Assembly: GCA_964188305.1 (NCBI GenBank)
Contig: OZ076898.1
Length of the DNA stretch: 64,000 bases
Source: Podarcis bocagei
Taxonomy: Eukaryota
Reading direction: 5' to 3' (one strand)
The translations under genes were made by a program, and so were the position numbers. Shown here piece after piece: positions 39,497 through 63,025 of the stretch. The notes below the pieces were generated by a model. That model saw only the letters and a program-made list of their open reading frames with translations. It was not told the DNA's origin and searched no databases. Position 1 is the first letter of the stretch. Each line of letters starts with the position of its first letter.

Positions 39497-39959
39497 CAGT
39501 GTTTCCCAACCTTTTTTGGGCAAAGGCACACTTGTTTGATGAAAAAATTCTCGAGGCACACCACCATTACAGCCCCGTGACGTCAGCGCGCAGCGTCACG
39601 CCGGGAGGGACGCACGAAAGTGTAAGTTTCAATTTTTTCCCCTCCCCCTTGCCGGGGAACCTCCAAGCTTTGGGGGTGGGGGGGAGGAGGCAGCAAAGCG
39701 AGGCAGGAAGGAGAGCGCGGCTTGGCTGGGTGAGCTTTGGCAGGGGCAGGGAATGAGACCCGCGAGGCGGGCGCTGCAGACGGAGGCGCTGCCTGCCGAG
39801 CTCGCAGGCAGCCAGGCAGGCAGACGGCGAGAGCTCCGCGCTGGGCGGCCTCTCCTCGCCGCCGCCGCCCCGCCTCTCGCCGCCCGACTCGCCCGCCTCC
39901 CTCCAGGCAACATCTCGCGGCACACTAGTGTGCCGCGGAACAGTGGTTGGGAAACACTG
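39497..39959. mobile_element. CpG-rich non-autonomous hAT (Charlie-like) element, 463 bp
   Basis: Perfect 15-bp TIR CAGTGTTTCCCAACC and perfect 8-bp TSD TTCTAGCA (39489-39496 / 39960-39967). Confidence 0.93.
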
Positions 39960-40102
39960 TTCTAGCACACCATAAAAGCAAACAGTGTCTGAACCTCCTA
40001 AAGCAGGAGTTCCCAAACTGTGGTCCATGGAACCCCAGTGGTAATGAACTTCATGCAGGTGATCCGTGGCACATCTGTGGATTTATGATTGAATACAGGA
40101 TA

Positions 40103-47606: not shown

Positions 47607-47981
47607 AAGGGAAGGGGGAGGGCTTTGCTTCCATTGGCTGCTCCTTGCCTTCCCACCCACATCTCTTCCACATCACCTTGGTGTCTCCCTAAATAAAACC
47701 AGCCCTCCTTATCGCAGCGAGGAAATCAAGCGGTAGAGTTGCAATGGATTTTAAATAAACATTTTACCCCCCCCTCCCCACACACACTGTCCCTGCCAGG
47801 CTGCTGGGGAGAGCACGCAGCAAGCACCTTCCCCACTGCCACCCAAACACTCACATGCAGCTGCCCTGCTTGCTGGCTGCTTCTGTTGCCTCTTTCACCC
47901 CATGAGGGAAAGCTGGAGCGCACGAGAAACTGGCTGCAGTCAGAGGAGGGAAGTGGCACCTTCATGACCAATCCTTTCTCC
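47430..47981 (+). promoter_or_regulatory. Putative ASIC2a proximal promoter / 5' UTR
   Basis: Directly upstream of the first coding exon. Contains a duplicated 30-bp element, TTTAAAT at 47503, (CA)n/(GT)n(GA)n tracts and TAAATAAA at about 47690 and 47752. The TSS cannot be determined from sequence. Confidence 0.45.
47512..47606. repeat. Compound (CA)n / (GT)n(GA)n microsatellite in the ASIC2a upstream region
   Basis: Directly visible. Confidence 0.9.
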
Positions 47982-48545
47982 ATGGATTTAAAGGAGAGCA
48001 CCAGCGAGGGAAGCCTGGGGAGCCTCCAGCCCTCCAGCCTCCAGATCTTTGCCAACACCTCAACCCTCCATGGAATCCGCCACATCTTTGTCTATGGACC
48101 TATGACTGTGCGGCGGGCCCTGTGGGCTCTGGTGTTTGTGGCTTCCCTGGGCCTCCTCCTGGTGGAGAGCTCCGAGCGGCTGGTCTACTACTTCTCCTAC
48201 CAGCATGTCACCAGAGTGGATGAGGTCGTTGCCCACAGCCTGGTCTTCCCAGCTGTTACCATCTGCAACCTCAACGGGTTCCGCTTCTCCCGCCTCACTA
48301 CCAATGACCTGTACCATGCTGGCGACCTATTGGCCTTGTTGGATGTCAACCTCCAGGTCCTTCACCCTCATCTCGCTGACCCAGCAGTCCTGGCCATCCT
48401 GCGAGAGAAGGCCAACTTCCAGCATCACCGAGCCAAAGTCTTCAGCATGAGTGAGTTCATGGGACGTGTGGGCCATGACATGAAGGAGATGTTGTTATAC
48501 TGCAAGTTCCGGGGGCAGGAGTGTGGCGAGAAGAACTTCACAACT
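47982..48545 (+). CDS. ASIC2: Acid-sensing ion channel 2, isoform 2a-specific first coding exon (3'-partial gene)
   Basis: MDLKESTSEGSLGSLQPSSLQIFANTSTLHGIRHIFVYGP...ESSER...YQHVTRVDEV...FPAVTICNLNGFRFSRLTTNDLYHAG...CKFRGQECGEKNFTT|gtgagt. 188 codons with the HG gating motif, TM1 and the ENaC/DEG FPAVTxCN signature. The N-terminus matches ASIC2a (MDLKES..EGSLQPSS) rather than ASIC1 or ASIC2b. Confidence 0.95.
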
Positions 48546-51500
48546 GTGAGTACAAACAAGAGTTTTGTTTTCCTTTTGGCATTAGTGGAAACAATGGGGA
48601 CAACCCAAGAAGTGAAAATTGGGTATCTCTGTTGGAGACCCTGGCTGATATATCTTGGTGACCCAGCTGTCTTGAACTGAAGCAGGTTTGTCTGCTATTC
48701 TTGTGGCCAATGGGCTTTTCGGGTTTTGAAGAGTGTAAGGCTTAAGGATGTAATGCCTGATAAGGTTTCTACTTTCTCTAGTGCAGGGTTGGGGGACCTG
48801 TGGCCCTCCAAATGTTTATGGACTGTAACTCCCATTATCCCTGACCTCTGACCATGCTTGCTGGGGCTGATGGGAATGGGAGTCCATCAAACCTTTGGAG
48901 GGCCACATCCCTGCTCTAGTGGTTGGTTGCTGCAGTTCCTGGAAGTACGGGACAGGAGGGGTGGGGAGAAGGATTGTATTCATGGCTTTATGGAAGATGT
49001 AGAGATCAGTGGCCAATGGATGGTGCATGGCAGCAAACTAGTGTTGAAATGACACTGTGCATTCTTGCTGATAATGGTTCAGATCAAGGTACAAAACTGT
49101 ATTGGACAGAGTCAGCCTGTTGGTCCATCTAATCTAAATGCTCTCTATGCTGGTAGCAGTCACCCAAGATTTCATTTTCCAGTACGAATGGGAACATGTG
49201 GTCCTCCAGATGCTGTTGGATTCCAGCTCCTATAATCACTGGCCTTAGTGGTTGAGACTTATGGGAGCTGGGAGACAGCAATGGCTGGAGGGCCACAAGT
49301 TCCACATCACTGGTCTTTCTCAGCTCACCTGCATGGGATGCTTCTACTGGAGAAACTGAGGATTGAACCAAGTATGTGTCCTACCACTGAGGTGCTCCTG
49401 GCCCTAGGGGAAACAGAGAGATCTATGGCTGATGGGTGGCAAGGGGCGCAATGAGATAAGGAAGACTGTCACTTCCTGGTGGTTCTGGCCTGTTGCAACT
49501 TTTTTTCTGTGGCTGTTGTGTGGTGGATAATAGGATTGCCTGATTTACCCCCAGAATCATTTACACATGTATTTTTCTCATTTTATGACTGTGGCTTGTG
49601 TATATGTGCATGCATGAGTCACAGCAGATAGAAGATTCACGTTCCCATGTATCTCATCCAACACAGTGCTTTTCAGTAGAGTTGGTTCACACTTTCCCAT
49701 GCCAAGCCATCGGGTGCAGTGTCATGCATGTGTGATCCAGTTTTTTGACCCTGCTTGTATGCTTTGAACAGCAACTGGAAACATAGACATTAATCTCAGT
49801 GAAGCTTTTCCCATCTTGGAAAGGAGAGTGGTGTGAATTGACTTGCTTTATTGTGTCTTTGTTACTAGTTGCCATTAAAGACACTGGAGCCAGGCCAGAA
49901 AGATAAGATGACAACATCAGGGCATAGAAGTGGGTGGGAGTTTGAACGTGTGTAGCATAATATTCTCCTGTATGCTACTGCTCAGCAAACTTCTTGTCCT
50001 GTAGGGTGACTGCTTCACCCCAACCTGCTTCTCTGTCTTCAACAGCAGCAGCCCAAGGTGGGGAAATGGAGCAATGCTAGGTTGGCACTGCAGGGTGGGA
50101 GATGCTTCACCCACTTCCTTTCTCTTTCTCAAACTGTTTTGAACCCCCTAACCCACCCCCAGGAGTAGGGCTAGGGGGGAAAAAAGCAAATTGGTAAGTT
50201 TATTTACCTACCAAACCTTTCTTCTCTTGGTTGGGACCTGGATGAGGGCTCACATGGAAAGGAACTAGTTTCCTCTGAGGGAAGTTGCAGGTTAGAATGT
50301 TGTACTCAAGTGGGTGCTGGTGGGTTGCAACGAGGCTAGGGATTGGGGCATCAATTAATTACAATTCATGTCACTTTTTAAAATATATACACACCTGCAT
50401 ATTGCTTACCCCAAAGAATCCTGGGATCTGTAATTTGTTAAGGGTGCTGGGAATTGTTGGTTGCTGAGAGGTGTGAGTTACACTTCCCAGGATTTTTTTT
50501 TGGGGGGGGGGTGAGCCATGGGCCTTTAAATGTATAGTGAACACAGCCATAAGCACTTCGTGTACATTATATTGTTTAGAATCCTTGCAACAATCCTGTA
50601 TGGTAGGTCAGTTTTATGATCCCCATGGGTAACCATGCAGTACCAGGCAAAAGCATTTTGCTGTTGGAGGTTGACTCCAAATGCCCATCTCCCCCACATG
50701 GGCAGTATTTTACAAAGTCTTGTTGCACTGTTCAGACACAGTTCCTGCCTTCCTTTTTCTCTACTCACCTACCCCACCAAGCCACCTGAAGCAAGTCTCT
50801 TCATGCTTCTGTGTGACAGGGCCATCCCTTTGCTTGTTTCTCAAACTTGGGTCCCCAGCTTTTGTTGGCCAACAACTGCCATCATCCCTAGCCAGCTGGA
50901 TGGTGGGAGTTGTAGTCCAACAACAGCTAGGGACCTATGCTTGAGAAACACTGGAAGGTCATGTAGTACGATAATGACAGAAGGGAGATTCACACTGGAA
51001 ACTTCTTGGTCTCTAACTCAGACTTTTAGCTTCTGCACCACACCAGCTCTCAATTGTTATTGATGTTTGGGGTGGCGGTCGTATGTACGTGTGTATACAC
51101 ACACACACACAGATTCTTTTCATAGAAAAAGAATATTAAACTTTCCTGATGCCTGGGAATGCTAAACCACAGATATTGTATGCGTGCTAGGAGCAAACTC
51201 CCAGGATTGAAAGTTTGGTCTGATTGACGGGAACTCACTGAAGGAAACCACTCTAAACCTGATGAAAGAATTCGTGAGAACCTTGATTGTCATCCAGAAA
51301 GGGGGAAGGGTTCATCATTCATGATGCTCCGATAGAATTCACACATTCTATAGCATTCCTACCCCCCACCCCCAAAGCTTGTTTGGAGAGGGTGGTTGCA
51401 GGAGCTTTTAAATTTGTGGAGTAGTTGTGTAGGGGTGTGTGTGTATTTGGGAGAATTAGCATACACAGCATTTTCCCTTTAAGAAACTATTGTGGCAAAT

Positions 51501-54610: not shown

Positions 54611-55726
54611 AATAAGGGAACTATGGGGGGCTAGGAGCTTAGGCCACAACCAGGCACTTACTGTGTGACTTCCTCATACTGGTCTCACTGTCAGACAGCT
54701 TGCCTGTATTTCTCTGCTGACAGCCGGTGTGAGTAGACCTAGAATGGGGAGATGTGGTAGTTAAAGGAAGCCTCTCCCAAGCAGGACTATTGCTCAGAGC
54801 TGAGAAATTTGGAATAAGAGAGGAGTGGATGAGATGGACCATGCTGAGCCTATTGGGGTCTGGTGGTGCTTTGCATTGCAGTTGTGCTATTTGTAGGCCA
54901 TCAAACTGAGTCACTGTCTCCCCTCCCCCCCCCACGCCCTGGGATATATTAGAAGGCCAAAGAAAATCCTAAATGTGAACTCCCAAGATTGCCAACTGAT
55001 TAGGGTGGGGAAATGAATAGACCTGCTCCTGTGCATTTAATGGTAACTTGATCTTCCAAAAAATCACCCGGTAAAGTTTTTAACAGTCTAGAGATGAGCA
55101 CCCATCACCTGGTAATTCTTGCTTATTAAGTTCCTGTTAAAACACAGGAGCTTAAAAATGTTGGCAACCCAAATTCCAGATACTGTACATGCTTTTTTTT
55201 TTAAGGGTGATCACAAAATCAAAGCACCCATGATTCTTTGTGAGCAGGTAGAGATGCAGTGCCTCAAAGAGCTTGTCCAGTTCTTGATGGGGGAAGGAAG
55301 TGTCCTGTGATGTACAAATGAAGCCTTTCATAGTGTCTGCTAGAAGAGCTTACATGAAAATCAGTACCCTAAGTGGCTATTAACTAACGGCGAATGCTGA
55401 TGGAGCGTTTGTGCCATTCCCGTGAATAACAAATGAATTTGTGTCCCGTCAAAACAATGAGGATGAATTGCAACTGAATAAACATGAGCATGCTTTACAA
55501 TTTGCCATTCTTCCCAGCTGACTCACGTTGTGGTTTTCCTGCAGTTTTGCACAGAGGCCATGCAAAGAAAGCCACCAAGAGCACAGTGCATCTCAGGACG
55601 CCATCCTGCACTAACCATATTTGGGATTAAATTAATGACGGTTTGCACTTGCAGTAGGGCTTGTGCAGGAGAACATGCTGCTGGCTTGTGTTTCCCAGTG
55701 TCCATTGGATATAGGTGAGTATAGGT

Positions 55727-55862
55727 CAGGCTTCCTCAACCTCGGCCCTCCAGATATTTTTGGCCTACAACTCCCATGATCCCTAGCTAGCGGGACCAGT
55801 GGTCAGGGATGATGGGAATTGTAGTCTCAAAACACCTGGAGGGCCGAGGTTGAGGAAGCCTG
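55727..55862. mobile_element. Young hAT MITE, 136 bp
   Basis: Perfect 27-bp TIR CAGGCTTCCTCAACCTCGGCCCTCCAG and perfect 8-bp TSD GTATAGGT (55719-55726 / 55863-55870). Confidence 0.92.
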
Positions 55863-56034
55863 GTATAGGTGGACTGGGGATAGTTTTGCCCTCCAATGCA
55901 TATAAAAAACAACACTCATATCTACTTAATGGGCACAGTAAATCCTAAACATGCTTATTATGAAGTAAGTCTTGTGCAAGCGACAACACACTCAAAGCCT
56001 AGTGACTTTATTTAATTTACTGGCTTAACTTGGG

Positions 56035-56320
56035 GTGCTTCCAGGCTGTCGCTGTTTTGGGGTGGGATTCAGTTATATCCTAGTAAATACAGGTCTTGCA
56101 ATTAAAGCTGATTTGGAAACCTTGTGCAACAAACCTGCTTCTCTAAATAATCAGGCTTTTTGTGATAAGGGAAGTGAAGGGGGAAAGCATTGGAAAGTGT
56201 GAGATAACACTTGCTTAACACAAGGGCAAATCAGGATGAATGCTCATTCAATATCAGGTTGTCAAACCTCTCAGCAACCAAATCAGGGTGAATGCTCAAT
56301 TAACAGGTTGTCTGGAAGAG
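56035..56320. repeat. Old interspersed repeat with a diverged inverted relative at about 61330-61565
   Basis: Collinear blocks TTTGGGGTGGGATTCA, CTTGTGCAACAAACC, TGGAAAGTGT..GATAACACTTGCTT and ATGAATGCTC recur in reverse complement at 61340-61560. Confidence 0.65.
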
Positions 56321-58318
56321 CAACCTATTTATTTAATTTATATCACACTCTTCTTCTGTGATGGGGCTCAGGGCAACATACATTGGGTCCCTGATGTTGA
56401 TCAGCCCTGCTGCCTGATGTGCCTTCAAGGCCATGAATCTTATTTCTTCCACACTCCAAAGAGAAACATATCCTTTGAATGAGCCCCTCCCATTAGGATG
56501 TACTCCAGAGCTAAAATTTGCCTCAACTATAAAATAAGGTATTAAATGACAAATTAGATATGTTAATAATGTGATAGGCACGTGTCTTTGTTTCTTCTTT
56601 TTGGTAAATAGCAACCTTGGGTGGGTGGGGGTGCTGCTGATCCTGAATACTGTCCACCATGTTTCTGTTTGCTCTGGGAAGGAACTCAGTGTGGTGTAAT
56701 GGTTAGCGTGTCAGATTAGGACCTGGGAGACTAGGGTTTGAATGCCCACACCCATGGAGCTCACTGGGTCTTATCACTGGTTTTCAGCTTAGCCTACCTC
56801 ACAATGTGAGGATAAAATGAAGGGAGAACCATGTACAATGTACACTGCAAATGGCACGCACATGTGTGACCATGCATGCTTTAAACACGTGCAAAATGAA
56901 AGTTGCCTGTATAACAGCTTCAGCAATTGTGGTTTGAAGTTAGCTTGTTGGACCAAATCATAGTTCAGATTAACCACAGTTCCCAGTCCAGGTGGCGTGA
57001 TGTCCTAAACCTTTACTTGTGGACTGGAGCTGTCTTCAAAAGAATCTCCTGGAGGTCAAACCTGGCACTGGGTTGAGAAAGTGTGTGTAGTTTATCTGCT
57101 GAGAGGAAGACAAGGTTGCTGCCTGTGAATCTATTCTGGGTCAATCCTGATTGCCGAAGTTGGCTTGGGAGTGGAGCTGGGCTTTATGAATATTTGATGG
57201 ACTCTATTCCTGGCAGCAGCAGCAGCAGCATGTCCTTGAAGGTGTCGAACAGAAAGGCAGGTGCCTTTTGCGTGTGAGCTCCTAGGTAGGGATTGCCCTC
57301 CTCTTGTGGGAGACACGTCAGACCCAGAAAGCCTGTCGTGAGGACAAGCCCATTGGTGTTTGGGTTTTTCTAAGGTTGATTTGCATTGACCCTTGAGACT
57401 TGCATCCAATATAGGTAGCAGAGTTACAACTCCCAGCAACTTTTAGCAAACCAGAGTGCCCAGAATTCTTTGAAGGAAAGAATGAGCTTTGAATATGCTT
57501 TAAAGGTATGGCGTGTACACAGCCTCATATAATGTAGCCTTGCATATTGTTTTTTCTTTCCCATTCAGGATCTGATTGATCATACATTTATATGGTGTCA
57601 GAAAATAGCCTACTACCACCACCCCTGTTCAGATTAGTGACTTTGAATCTGTTTAGTGACGAGTGTCCTCTGTGGCTAGGCTTCCTAGCTGGTGACACTG
57701 GGGACTGTTTGCTTTGCAGACTCTTTCTGTGGGCAGCACACTTTCCTTTCATCTGGCTCGGATTGATTTGCGGGGGCTGTGTCAGTCCCGTCTCCTGTCA
57801 AGCTGAAGTAAGGACCAGATAAAGGTCACCTCCACACCATACATTTTAAGTTTGGAGCTGCGCTATAACTCAGCTCTTAGAAGCTAGATCTGCTGCAGCT
57901 CCTCCCATCTAGAATAGGGATGAGGAAGAAATTCATTCAGTTCACATTTTAATGCAAGCCTACCTAATTCACATTTCCTGAACCAATCAGATAGGGCTGA
58001 GGAGCCTTTTCCAGCCTAAAGGCCACATTCCCTTCTGGGGGCCACATGGCAGTGATGATTGGGGCCAGGAGCAAAAAGTGTGCGGAAACAGGGCAAACAG
58101 AACTTAAGGTTGGAAAAATGAGAAATTGAGAAACTGATAGATTTGTCCATCCTTAGGGGGGAGGAGTCGCACTTCTATTTCCTACATAAACAGCCTCAGT
58201 TCCTGCCAGTCTATTTTTTTAGTGGGGTAAAAACAAAGCCTTCTTTGTTTTCAACATGTTCAGGTAGATGCTAAATGACTGTGATCCATGTCCTTTTATT
58301 GTGAAGCCTGACCACGTA

Positions 58319-58646
58319 CCGTATTTTTTGCTCTATAAGACTCACTTTTTCCCTCCTAAAAAGTAAGGGGAAATGTGTGTGCGTCTTATGGAGCGAATGC
58401 AGGCTGCACAGCTATCCCAGAAGCCAGAACAGCAAGAGGGGTGGGATTCAGTTATATCCTAGTAAATACAGGTCTTGCAATTAAAGCTGATTTGGAAACC
58501 TTGTGCAACAAACCTGCTTCTCTAAAAAGAGAATCCCTCTTGCTGTTCCGGCTTCTGAGATTCAGAATATTTTTTTTCTTGTTTTCCTCCTCCAAAAACT
58601 AGGTGCGTCTTGTGGTCTGGTGCGTCTTATAGAGCGAAAAATACGG
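58319..58646. mobile_element. Tc1/mariner (Tc2/pogo-like) MITE carrying an 89-bp captured segment
   Basis: TA|CCGTATTTTTTGCTCTATAAGAC ... GTCTTATAGAGCGAAAAATACGG|TA, with subterminal GTGCGTCTT repeats. Confidence 0.9.
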
Positions 58647-60781
58647 TAGTCTTGTGTAGGGGAAGTGAATACTTAGTAGTGAAGAAAAAAGTACAAGATA
58701 GAAGCAGGATTATTTGCGATCAGTGATGGGGACATTGATTGTCAAGTAATTGCAATGTGGCTTGGAAGATGAGTACTTTGTGCCTGGAGAGTATTGGAAT
58801 ACCGTATTCTCGTAGTTCTGTATATTGGATCAAATAAGTTAAATAAAAAGTACTTTTCTGTGACACAATTTCAAACCGAACGTTTCAATTGAGATTTAGA
58901 CATGTCAGATCAGACTTCAGGTTGAGGTGGGTGAGGAAGAGATTTTGATGAATGTGACAAGATTCTCAGCAAACTTCAATGGTCTCCTTTTTGATATATT
59001 GCAGACTAAGTTGCAAAAAAGTGGGAGAAAAAGAAAAGAAGTGTATTTTAAGACTGTTTGTTGTGTTTTTTTATATATATATATATACTTCATAGTAACT
59101 ATAGCAATGAAGTCAAGCAGTCGCCCTTTCCTTTTAAGTGAAGAGATCTGTGCCTTTCCAGGTATCAAGCACATGTAACAATAGCCACTCATTGTGTAGA
59201 ACTGATAACATGGCTTGGAGTATAGGTTCTTCTAAGGAATCAGCACATGGACTGAAACAAGGGGAGGAATGATGGATTTAAGATCTTTTTGCTCTTTGGT
59301 GAATTAAAGTATTACTGTGGAGCTGCATGAAATGCAGTGCGGAAATTTTAAGGCCTCAGGATGTTATTTAGGTAACTCCTAGCACACAAAAACAGGAGTA
59401 TCCATCCACATAACAGCTTATGGAGGCCAAAGTGTACCTCAAACAGGGAGAGCAGGTACAGTCTGCACAGTAAGTGACTTTGGCAAGTGAGCCCAGCTAC
59501 ATGCTACAGGAGTAAGGTGGCATCACCAGCTATGATATATAGTCATGGGGAAAATTACAGCTGTTGTCTATATCATGATATGCTATTGCCCATCCTTGAG
59601 CATGACATCAAATTAAGCACTGGAACGTAACAGATCCAAACCAGCAAAACTGGTCTCTAACGGCTAGATTTCTTTGAAAATACTTTGGGATTTCATCTTT
59701 TGCTGTATTAGATGGCAGGACTGCAGATCTGCTGCAGTGCATTTAAATGCAGGCTGCAGATAATGCCAGCTATGGCGTCAGGCAGGCGGGAGCCCTCCTC
59801 AAGGGACGCTTTCTAGCAGGTCCAGAGGATCTTTTCCTTGTCTTATGAACTAGTTCAGCTATTTATCAGGTAGATTTGCTCCAGGTTGTCAGAGACTCAT
59901 TGTGCCTATATGCTTGTTCTGCACTCCTGCAGCCCAAAACAATCTGTAGCATTTGGGGCTATTTGATAAATAATGCACTGAGAGCATTTGCCACATGCAT
60001 GCTGATGTTCAGTGTGAAACTCATTAGATGTGAAACTCAGAAAAATGTTGATAAGAGACACATAAGTGGACATAGGCAAGGGGGCTGAATGCAATCAGGG
60101 CTCCTTGGTGTGTGTCTAGTGCATGTCCCTCTGTGTGTGTCTGCAAACATTTCTAAGTCATACTTTATGGTGTTTGCGGCTTCTGACGCCAGTGTACAAA
60201 CAAAGGTGCATACAGAGCTGCCACTTTGGTATTAAGGAGCAGGGCTTTCAGAGGACACTCAGGTTTTTTGATGTATGTACAGTTCTCACTGTATGTGTGT
60301 CTGCTGAACAAAAACCAGGGTGAGTATGTGCTATGGTACAGTGACTCTGTACCCACAGCCTGCATGCTGTGTTGTTTTTTTTTTAATGTGGAGGAATACT
60401 GGGCTTTATGAAGCTGCTCAAACGTGCCAACATGTGCAGACTTAGAGGGGTGGGGGAGAGAAATCTGGCTCACAAGATGGGACAGGACAGAAGGTGTTGC
60501 AAATTGTTTGTCTAAATAACTGTTGCTAAGGGACTCGGAAGCAAGATGTGAGGCGGTCGTTTTTATGCGCTGGAACTACCAGGCATAAAGATCATGCTAG
60601 GCTGTGCTGCGTTATTGAGTATAGACTCTGAGGGACAGCTGAAGGTTTTTGTTGCCCTAGGTCAATTAAAATCCTCCCCTCCCCTGCGACTTACTGTAGG
60701 CTGAGCAGCATAACCGTAAAACATCAAATGGGCATGGGATGTTATTTTTGTTTTTAACTTCAATAATTGGACCATCATACC

Positions 60782-60917
60782 CAGGGCTTTTTTTCAGTCA
60801 GAACTCACTGGAATTCAGTTCCAGCACCTCTCAAGTGGGCACCATTGCCATTATAAGTGAACAAGGAAGGCATTTATGCTGAGTTCTGGCAACTCTTTTT
60901 CTAGAAAAATAGCACTG
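60782..60917. mobile_element. hAT-type MITE, 136 bp
   Basis: CAGGGCTTTTTTT...AAAAATAGCACTG termini and perfect 8-bp TSD ATCATACC. Confidence 0.85.
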
Positions 60918-63025
60918 ATCATACCACTCTACTCCACAGATTTGGATTAAATTCTAGGCACCATCAGCTAACATACTTTAGACAATTCACTTCACATATA
61001 AGCATGCATTAGAAAACTTGATCAATCCAGTTCTGTCTCCAAGACATTAACATAGCTGAGACAAGAGCCCCTGGCTATTCTGGTGCCCCAGGCAGTTCCC
61101 TGATTTACCTCTAGGACTGTGTCAGCCCTTCAGACTGTGAGGTGCCAGTGACATCAACTAATACAACTGTGTGAAAACTGGTTAGTGCGAAAGATTCAAT
61201 TTTGAGAAGTATGTGTGCTTCCACTATTCCATCCTGAAACCACCACCAGCTTCCAAACTAACTGCCTGTCGAGCATTCATTCTGGATTGGTTTGCATGAC
61301 GTTTGTGGGAGATTATCCGTACGATATTGGCTGTTTATGGAGCATTCATTGAGATTTGTTTGTGAGGAGGTTATATCTTTCAACAAGCAAGTGTTATCCA
61401 ACACTTTCCAGTGCACTTTCCTGTCCCTTTCCTTGCTGCAAAAAGTTCAGTTTTTTGGGGGCTGGGGAGGGAAGTGGGTTTGTTGCACAAGAGCACCAAA
61501 TCCACTTTTATTGTGCAACCTGAATTTGCTGGTGTGTGATTGAATCCCACCCACAAAATAGTAGTAGCCAGGAAACTCCCTAGTTTGCAAGTCACAGCAG
61601 GACCAATGCTTGCAGCATTAGCACTCTTGAAGTCATTAAATTGAGCTGAATGGGATTTGGGGGAAAGAGTTTGCTTGAGAATCACATCACAAAAAGTCTT
61701 AATTTATATTTTCTTAGCTAGATAATCTTTTTCAACCTTTCCTTCTATGGATTCTGTTAAGTAACAGATGTAGGACACAAATGTTTTGTTTATACCTACC
61801 ATTGTAGGGGAAGTGAAAAGTTATTAGAGCAAGCTGTTAAATATTGGGGGATGGGGATTGTAGTTTTTGGTTTTCATGGTATCCACCAGCCGTCTTGAGC
61901 ACCATGCCAAATGACTGTGGCCTTTTGTATTTAAGGAAAGTACACTAGAGTGCTACTTTTCAAATTATTTTCAATAACATCTAAAGCAAAAGAAAGAAAT
62001 AAGATGTAGAATCATTGTAGGGATACTACTGGAAAACATAAATAATCAAAGTCAATGCTGTCAAGCATCCGTTTGCCAGAGCTACTTAAATTTCAGAAGC
62101 AGAATTTGAAAAATGTTTAGAATTCCAAGGAAGTCAAACTTGAAAACTGTTTTTCAGTTGTCAAATTTGACTAGCATTATTCTCCAGCTCTGCTATTGAA
62201 CAGGAGCCACGATCACATTAAATCTGGCTAGTGCAGAGTAGATTTCAGATTGCTGGCTAAAATTGTTTCTGGATCACAGTAGTGCTGGAAGATGGAGGCT
62301 GTCAGCCAGTGGCTCGGGGTCCCCTGAAAGATTCATGCCACTTGGGACACCCTGACAGCCAAGATGCCTGCTATTTATGCTTCTGTAGCTCCTTGCAGAG
62401 GGTGGAAAGAGGGCATCGTGTTCATTGAAACCACTATTTTCTAACATAATGAACTGTTCTTGCCCTTTAATGACCACAGCTGACTCTGCAAACAGTAACA
62501 GGGTCCTTCTGCATAGGACTGTTAATGCACAAGATGACTCTTCAGGGTATCAGGATGGTCATATGTGCTCCCATGTTCCAAGTCAATTTGCACATTCAAT
62601 ACCTTTCTGGATGGTCTCATAGCATCTGTCACAAGCCATGCATGGTCTGTAGCTTTTTGCAGGAAACCTGTAAGATTTTGTACCACAAACATTCTGATTT
62701 ATTATTTTTTGGGAGGGTGTGGGTTCTGCTTTTGTTGTGCTATAGCCCTGGCAATGTGCTGAACTAATTTTGCTTCTTTGTGGTGTACTTCACGGTGATG
62801 CTGAATACTGCCATTCTTTTTTGGGGGGATGGAAACAAGCAAAGGTTTAGCACAGCAATCATAGCCTTTATAGCTGTTTAAAAGTGTAACGGTGGTATAC
62901 AGCTGACTACACTTGAAGGAGTGGGAAAGGGAGAGAAGTTTGTGCTAGGGCATCCTGGCAATTTACTCAGTTAAAATTGTTTTTTAAAAAGAGGCAGGAG
63001 TAGGCGCACGTGCGTATGTCCGTAT

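Follow-up and report, generated by a model that had tools for sequence, protein, structure and literature searches.

A direct 89-nt duplicate of nearby DNA at the centre of a palindromic MITE in Podarcis bocagei, probably a templated patch gained without transposition

We analysed a 64,000-nt window (the whole stretch of DNA under study) of the wall lizard Podarcis bocagei, a lacertid, from assembly GCA_964188305.1, contig OZ076898.1. An open frame at 47739-48680 on the + strand matches, in its best part at ~48048-48560, the N-terminal 176 positions of the Pfam family ASC (amiloride-sensitive sodium channel) with E = 2.8e-30, and, judging from this similarity, probably represents a large exon, the first coding one, of an ASIC-type channel gene located downstream of ATP6V0A1. 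Between ATP6V0A1 and this ASIC-like exon, at ~39550-40030, Arg/Gly/Ala/Pro-rich ORFs overlap on both strands, and because of this composition the region suggests a GC-rich, CpG-island-like stretch, possibly a promoter. Further downstream lie a MITE and the donor of a sequence carried in its centre, both of which may be situated in the first intron of the ASIC-type gene. The coordinates of the MITE, the donor and the related repeats are listed in Table 1.

Table 1. Features of the MITE, of the duplicate in its centre and of the repeat that holds the donor
Feature	Position	Strand	Remark
Left TA target-site duplication	58317-58318		Sequence read; same as TA at 58647-58648
Right TA target-site duplication	58647-58648		Sequence read
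Left terminal inverted repeat	58319-58345	+	25/27 complementary to 58620-58646; 27/29 including TA
Right terminal inverted repeat	58620-58646	+	25/27 complementary to 58319-58345
Subterminal copy of right-TIR core GTGCGTCTTATGGAGCGAA	58379-58397	+	95% identical to 58620-58638; inverted relative to left TIR
Left arm, internal inverted repeat	58414-58440	+	27 nt, 2 mismatches against 58535-58561
Right arm, internal inverted repeat	58535-58561	+	27 nt, 2 mismatches against 58414-58440
Captured copy	58438-58526	+	89/89 identical to 56059-56147
Putative mini-hairpin TTCTCT-AAAA-AGAGAA	58518-58533	+	6-bp stem in MFE folds, next to the long stem
AAGAGAAT, MITE sequence between duplicate and 27-nt right arm	58527-58534	+	Interpreted as a continuation of the right arm towards the centre
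Donor (template) of the 89-mer	56059-56147	+	Embedded in older repeat 56033-56318
Old repeat copy A, holding the donor	56033-56318	+	68-79% identical to reverse complement of 61250-61580
Old repeat copy B, inverted and diverged, outgroup for the copying direction	61250-61580	-	68-79% against copy A

The MITE occupies 58319-58646, corresponding to 328 bp (330 bp in total by another count), or ~241 bp without the 89-nt patch in its centre. The initial annotation had described an intact, TA-flanked element with a 23-bp internal inverted repeat, and both parts of this description agree with our comparison: TA is present on both sides, the terminal inverted repeats (TIRs) are complementary at 25/27 positions, and the inner part of the arms (58418-58440 / 58535-58557) is complementary at 22/23 positions and extends to 27 nt with two mismatches. 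The TIR score compares the two ends of this one element with each other, not with a family consensus. The TA duplication and TIRs, together with the small size and the non-coding nature of the element, conform to a MITE of the Tc1/mariner superfamily. Its longest ORF (75 aa) runs across the patch, and a word search of a protein collection revealed no relative sharing words with this ORF. Folding of the whole MITE gave z = -7.8.

In the 64-kb window, the left TIR showed no further match besides the right TIR, and the MITE family is represented by this single copy. A strict TIR pattern gave 0 matches in metagenome contigs, and 0 matches to the TIR pattern were found in bacterial and archaeal genome contigs. 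With a looser pattern, 108 loci were detected in the metagenome contigs, where the best 80 of 108 were chance matches in microbial contigs; the top matches among those listed reached 27/30 over the TIR only, and were accompanied by neither a second end nor an interior.

The subterminal regions of the element, 58346-58400 and 58582-58646, form a pair of direct repeats (74%), the resemblance being found between 58348-58397 and 58582-58638 in direct orientation (74%). The left end bears an inward-facing second TIR core, and the right end a partial tandem (GTGCGTCTTGTGG..GTGCGTCTTATAG). Because of these subterminal direct repeats and the extra copies of the TIR core, the MITE itself looks like the product of an earlier internal rearrangement, or like the bearer of extra transposase-binding repeats.

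Between the arms of the internal inverted repeat, the segment 58438-58526 is identical at 89/89 positions to 56059-56147, on the same strand and at a distance of 2379 bp from start to start, as had been seen by eye and was borne out by comparison. Of this patch, 77-86 nt are unambiguously foreign to the MITE, and its position is the exact middle of the element, the remainder of which measures 119 nt on the left and 120 nt on the right. A 30-mer taken from the 89-mer gave only two matches in the 64-kb window with up to 3 mismatches allowed (0 expected by chance), and 100 shuffles yielded no matches for 23-30-mers, which rules out chance. The next-best relative of the 89-mer in the window, at 61468-61552, is inverted and 74% identical. 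The duplicate is well beyond chance, and its local templated origin is well supported.

The 89-mer contains no CpG. Zero differences among 89 positions set a 95% upper bound of ~3.4% on the divergence between the two copies, from exp(-89d) = 0.05. Because the arm pairs of the MITE mismatch at 4/54 positions compared with 0/89 between the duplicates, the patch looks younger than the element, a weak point since the arm mismatches may predate insertion.

The direction of copying could be read from the older repeat in which the donor is embedded. The homology between its copies A and B passes both ends of the 89-mer unbroken, by 26 nt or more on the upstream side and 69 nt or more on the downstream side, whereas the MITE sequence adjoining the 89-mer shows no similarity to either old-repeat copy. 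Because the homology of the donor to copy B crosses both boundaries and the MITE flanks are unrelated, the 89-mer has, on this sequence comparison, its original place at the upstream locus and came to the MITE later. The comparison likewise supports the upstream neighbour 2.4 kb away as the template, since the one further relative within the 64 kb is ~26% diverged. The nearby upstream copy had been proposed as the template from the outset, and the homology of copy B through both ends of the 89-mer strengthens that proposal. The other old-repeat copy had been described as heavily diverged, which agrees with its 68-79% identity, but it is inverted rather than direct and spans 61250-61580 rather than ~61330-61565.

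The old repeat is either interspersed or duplicated, and each of its copies, 56033-56318 and 61250-61580, also holds a ~25-nt motif twice (CAAATCAGGNTGAATGCTC...). No Rfam family was matched on 55500-62000. The possibility that the two copies mark, as long TIRs, the ends of an ancient transposon of 5.5 kb was rejected, the homology covering only ~300 bp with nothing further outward, as was the possibility that the MITE flanks represent an old-repeat copy, a sensitive BLAST of the flanks having matched only the flanks themselves. A second, unrelated palindromic MITE was found at 55727-55862, with 58-nt arms of 88% complementarity around a 20-nt spacer, and with TIRs starting CAGGCTTCC. A perfect 8-bp direct repeat, GTATAGGT, is present on both sides of it (window 55719-55870), and because of this repeat the sequence suggests a hAT-type insertion. 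It is the nearest recognisable MITE to the donor, 197 bp upstream.

The junctions of the patch were then compared with the sequence expected from palindrome symmetry. At the left junction, arm and duplicate overlap by the 3 nt GGG at 58438-58440, which as part of the arm pair with CCC 58535-58537; the donor reads TTTT-GGGG-T at this point. Starting at the sixth base of the donor piece (5 nt in), the donor-derived GGGATTC at 58443-58449 is complementary to GAATCCC at 58532-58538. The initial annotation had drawn attention both to the GGG microhomology and to this pairing capacity, and both were found. The register used at the left junction is, however, the 3-4-nt GGG(G) and not the better GGGATTC 5 nt downstream, which the model given below leaves unexplained. 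Priming by the bottom strand of the right arm on the donor GGGATTC was considered on paper and rejected, as it would produce an inverted insert.

The right junction reads ...CTTCTCTAAA at the end of the duplicate, followed by AAGAGAAT-CCCTCTTGC..., and the donor piece ends with TTCTCTAAA, that is, TTCTCT(AAA). The sequence AGAGAATCCC occurs once in the window, and from its reverse complement the left-arm tip is predicted to read ATTCTCTT; the sequence to the right of the patch, when reverse-complemented, gives a predicted left tip of GAGGGATTCTCTT, and the left arm is predicted once to have continued ...CAAGAGGGATTCTCTT. From palindrome symmetry, the lost tip of the left arm is predicted to be GAGGGATTCTCT. 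The segment 58518-58526 (TTCTCTAAA) may thus be common to the duplicate and the predicted native tip, and the homology at the right junction amounts to 3-9 nt, depending on that tip. The mini-hairpin at 58518-58533 is built from the donor-derived end and the adjoining MITE sequence.

On sequence comparison, the donor piece looks as if it carried one half of the predicted lost tip at each of its ends. When 89-mers were drawn at random from the two strands of the window, an equally good match to the predicted arm was seen at the start in 1.2%, at the end in 3.4% and at both ends in ~0.05% (about 5e-4); on the + strand of the 64 kb, TTCTCTAAA occurs only in the donor, besides the copy within the MITE. 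The symmetry-restored palindrome has a 34-bp stem and a 4-nt loop, with a folding energy of -34.1 kcal/mol as single-stranded DNA. The most economical model of the native centre would be ...GAGGG-A-TTCTCT-AAAA-AGAGAATCCCTC..., and it predicts that other copies of the family read ...CAAGAGGGATTCTCT-(A)n-AGAGAATCCCTCTTG... at their centre, with the 89-mer absent. Because the donor ends match the symmetry-predicted tip, the model suggests that the left arm broke ~7 nt before the loop and that the right junction involved at most 9 nt of homology.

In conjunction with the central position of the patch, these junctions lead us to a reading to which we assign a probability of roughly 0.65, namely that a break or stalled synthesis at the palindrome after insertion was patched by short templated copying from nearby. 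The MITE would have inserted first, with a near-perfect internal palindrome of ~34-bp arms and a ~4-nt loop (by symmetry); it is the nesting of the patch within the element that suggests this order. The palindrome would then have broken, or stalled a polymerase, close to its centre; a position ~7 nt before the loop in the left arm is probable, which would place the break between GAGGG(A) and TTCTCT. A free 3' end may have paired by a few bases with the DNA 2.4 kb upstream on the same chromosome, one end through TTCTCTAAA (9 nt) and the other through GGG(G), after which ~80 nt (~77-80 nt truly new) would have been copied from the donor and the new strand would have re-annealed to the opposite side of the break. 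The outcome would be the 89-nt perfect direct duplicate within the hairpin, at the cost of at most a few bases of the MITE, perhaps one.

The process is best read as transposition-independent gap filling, either by SDSA or by a replicative template switch, giving a single-copy 'Pack-TIR'. Templated repair without transposition is favoured because a complete element holds a central breakpoint with negligible deletion, the junction homology is short and the template lies in the same orientation 2.4 kb away on the same chromosome. Both SDSA and a FoSTeS/MMBIR-type switch would yield this product, and the sequence is compatible with either of them and with either strand having switched first. A break at the centre of the hairpin is plausible. 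The scenario of the initial annotation, a break at the hairpin tip followed by microhomology-primed copying, is retained as far as the junction GGG, the palindrome centre and the published Pack-TIRs (Tan et al. 2021, Nat Commun 12:4280, PMC8277862) support it, but the break would be shifted from the tip itself to ~7 nt before the loop.

The trigger may instead have been a transposase, in which case the MITE would have been excised and its inward refilling from the sister chromatid would have aborted at the hairpin, with a brief switch to the upstream template. The TIRs and the TA duplication are present, the hairpin is a plausible spot for repair synthesis to dissociate, and abortive gap repair is established for P elements and given as an alternative by Tan et al. 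(PMC8277862). Abortive gap repair, however, usually leaves large internal deletions; this MITE has lost hardly any sequence, its breakpoints lie exactly at the centre, and synthesis from both ends would have had to fail at the same central point. We regard excision-triggered abortive gap repair as unlikely, and as a weaker alternative to transposition-independent patching.

Similarly doubtful is a stronger form of the account, in which the palindrome tip chose its own donor through the GGGATTC and TTCTCTAAA matches, or in which the present copy is a Pack-MITE loaded but not yet transposed. If the choice of donor were guided by the tip, the palindromes of MITEs would be sequence-specific 'capture sites', and their cargo would be predictable from 6-9-nt matches within the surrounding few kb. 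If the family were still mobile, this copy would represent a Pack-MITE just after loading, before any transposition. As for a nascent Pack-type MITE with the capacity to mobilise host DNA, put forward in the initial annotation, the ends look intact, but the notion stays a conjecture, because there is one copy in 64 kb and its TIRs already differ at 2 positions.

The identity of the two copies could also have arisen after the capture, if the 89-mer or a diverged homologue had been present in the MITE subfamily beforehand and the two loci had become identical through a local hop or gene conversion. DNA transposons often reinsert locally and gene conversion is common between repeats a few kb apart, but the sole other old-repeat copy in the window is ~26% diverged, so that the identity points to the locus 2.4 kb away; in addition, the junction overlap is typical of a primary template switch and the 64 kb contain no second MITE copy. 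We consider such a history improbable. Still less probable is an assembly artefact, in which a chimeric read or a mis-join put the local 89-mer into the hairpin. Palindromes are hard for polymerases and assemblers, and the junctions are read from the assembly; however, known palindrome artefacts are inverted rather than direct duplications, the junctions are clean, with microhomology and with both arms preserved, the window contains no Ns, and an exact 89-nt direct copy from 2.4 kb is atypical of polishing or collapse errors. A patch templated by RNA, that is, by a reverse-transcribed piece of a transcript covering the donor, possibly intron RNA of the surrounding gene, can be set aside as highly improbable: donor and copy are in the same orientation and both lie 8-10 kb downstream of the ASIC-family first exon on the + strand, where they may share a transcription unit, but neither poly(A) nor a splice signature is found, and DNA-templated copying from nearby chromatin is simpler and explains everything.

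Templated repair without transposition is in line with the catalogue of Tan et al. 2021, in which 370 Pack-TIRs from 100 animal genomes were collected (PMC8277862). Single-copy Pack-TIRs were attributed mostly to transposition-independent gap filling, 57% of them having the parental copy no more than 15 kb away and the majority of these no more than 5 kb; a breakpoint showed microhomology in 68% (median 2 bp, range 1-36), the gap had a median of 4.6% of element size, and the breakpoints were skewed to the interior, "possibly induced by secondary structures" (PMC8277862). In 94% of the primate cases, an outgroup whose element lacks the patch spoke for this kind of gap filling (PMC8277862). The lizard MITE shares with these elements two intact TIR ends, young and near-identical non-element DNA inside, a parent on the same chromosome at <5 kb, microhomology, internal breakpoints and little loss.

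Set against the definitions used for that catalogue, the MITE has two TIR parts (58319-58345 / 58620-58646), each of which exceeds the 10 bp of termini demanded, and a parent of 100% identity and equal length (89 vs 89 nt), where at least 90% identity and a length ratio of 80-120% are asked for. The parent is unique as far as the 64-kb window extends, the next-best match being 74%. The catalogue further asks for TE-free 100 bp around the parent, a control for segmental duplication (PMC8277862); the donor in this case lies within an old ~300-bp repeat, and the nearest recognisable MITE is 197 bp off. With 89 bp, the patch falls short of the >100 bp required, which is a pipeline cut-off and not a mechanistic one. 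The MITE works like a Pack-TIR, yet would escape listing by length. Apart from this cut-off, it differs from the catalogued Pack-TIRs in its lacertid host ('lizard' and 'Anolis' are absent from the main text of PMC8277862), in its cargo, which is a fragment of an old repeat and not gene sequence, and in a break at a defined palindrome centre with tip homology at both ends of the donor.

Publications already cover this class of mechanism, the bias towards nearby templates and the role of microhomology, and the locus opens no new question in these respects; the novelty initially claimed for this route of sequence acquisition was overstated, as animal TIR elements have been described in this way (PMC8277862). 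What the locus offers is a clean natural case of a non-autonomous DNA transposon that would have gained foreign sequence without moving, and a legible one, with the source 2.4 kb away, two readable junctions and a putative break at a defined palindrome centre. Such a break would provide sequence-level support for secondary structure as a cause of capture breaks in TIR elements, a cause inferred only statistically by Tan et al. 2021 (PMC8277862). As the locus also shows, patches shorter than 100 bp escape surveys that use this length as their lower limit.

Several other systems can be compared with this MITE. Long inverted repeats with short spacers, such as the palindromic AT-rich repeats of human translocations, are fragile sites. 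The MITE resembles them in that its palindrome is near-perfect and its spacer very short, an arrangement at which breaks and stalled forks occur preferentially, but its arms (~34 bp) are much shorter than those of classic fragile palindromes, and breakage is here what we infer. Abortive gap repair and filler DNA at DNA transposons were reportedly described by Gloor and colleagues in 1991 (Gloor et al. 1991) and by Dooner and Weil in 2007 (Dooner and Weil 2007). The events at P, Ac/Ds and Tc1/mariner elements are similar in that a template switch by short homology takes place in or at a DNA transposon, but they come after excision, and a large part of the element is usually deleted, whereas the present element is essentially complete. 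In mosquito, microhomology-mediated miniaturisation has been described as a route to the birth of MITEs (PMC3814204). The Pack-MULE, Pack-CACTA and Pack-TYPE elements of plants (PMC6379663, PMC8903248) are likewise non-autonomous TIR elements with captured host DNA; they are defined by gene fragments and are often multicopy and mobile, in contrast to the single copy without a gene fragment found here.

With respect to the repair pathway, the present insert would have been formed by copying from an ectopic template. Insertions of the Pol-theta type usually measure from a few to ~30 nt and have their template no more than tens of bases from the break. Templated and inverted insertions in yeast (PMC11724301) and FoSTeS/MMBIR share with the patch the microhomology-primed ectopic copying at a break or stalled fork, and in SD-MMEJ / Pol theta end joining (PMC2943611, PMC11292364) microhomology also primes copying from an ectopic template into a break. 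As in Pol-theta-type repair (TMEJ / SD-MMEJ), the left junction carries microhomology (GGG), but the template is not break-adjacent, lying 2379 bp away. Of the two pathways named in the initial annotation, SDSA fits and a Pol-theta-like route is unlikely, because 80-89 nt were inserted from a template 2.4 kb away; SDSA or FoSTeS-like switching fits the patch better.
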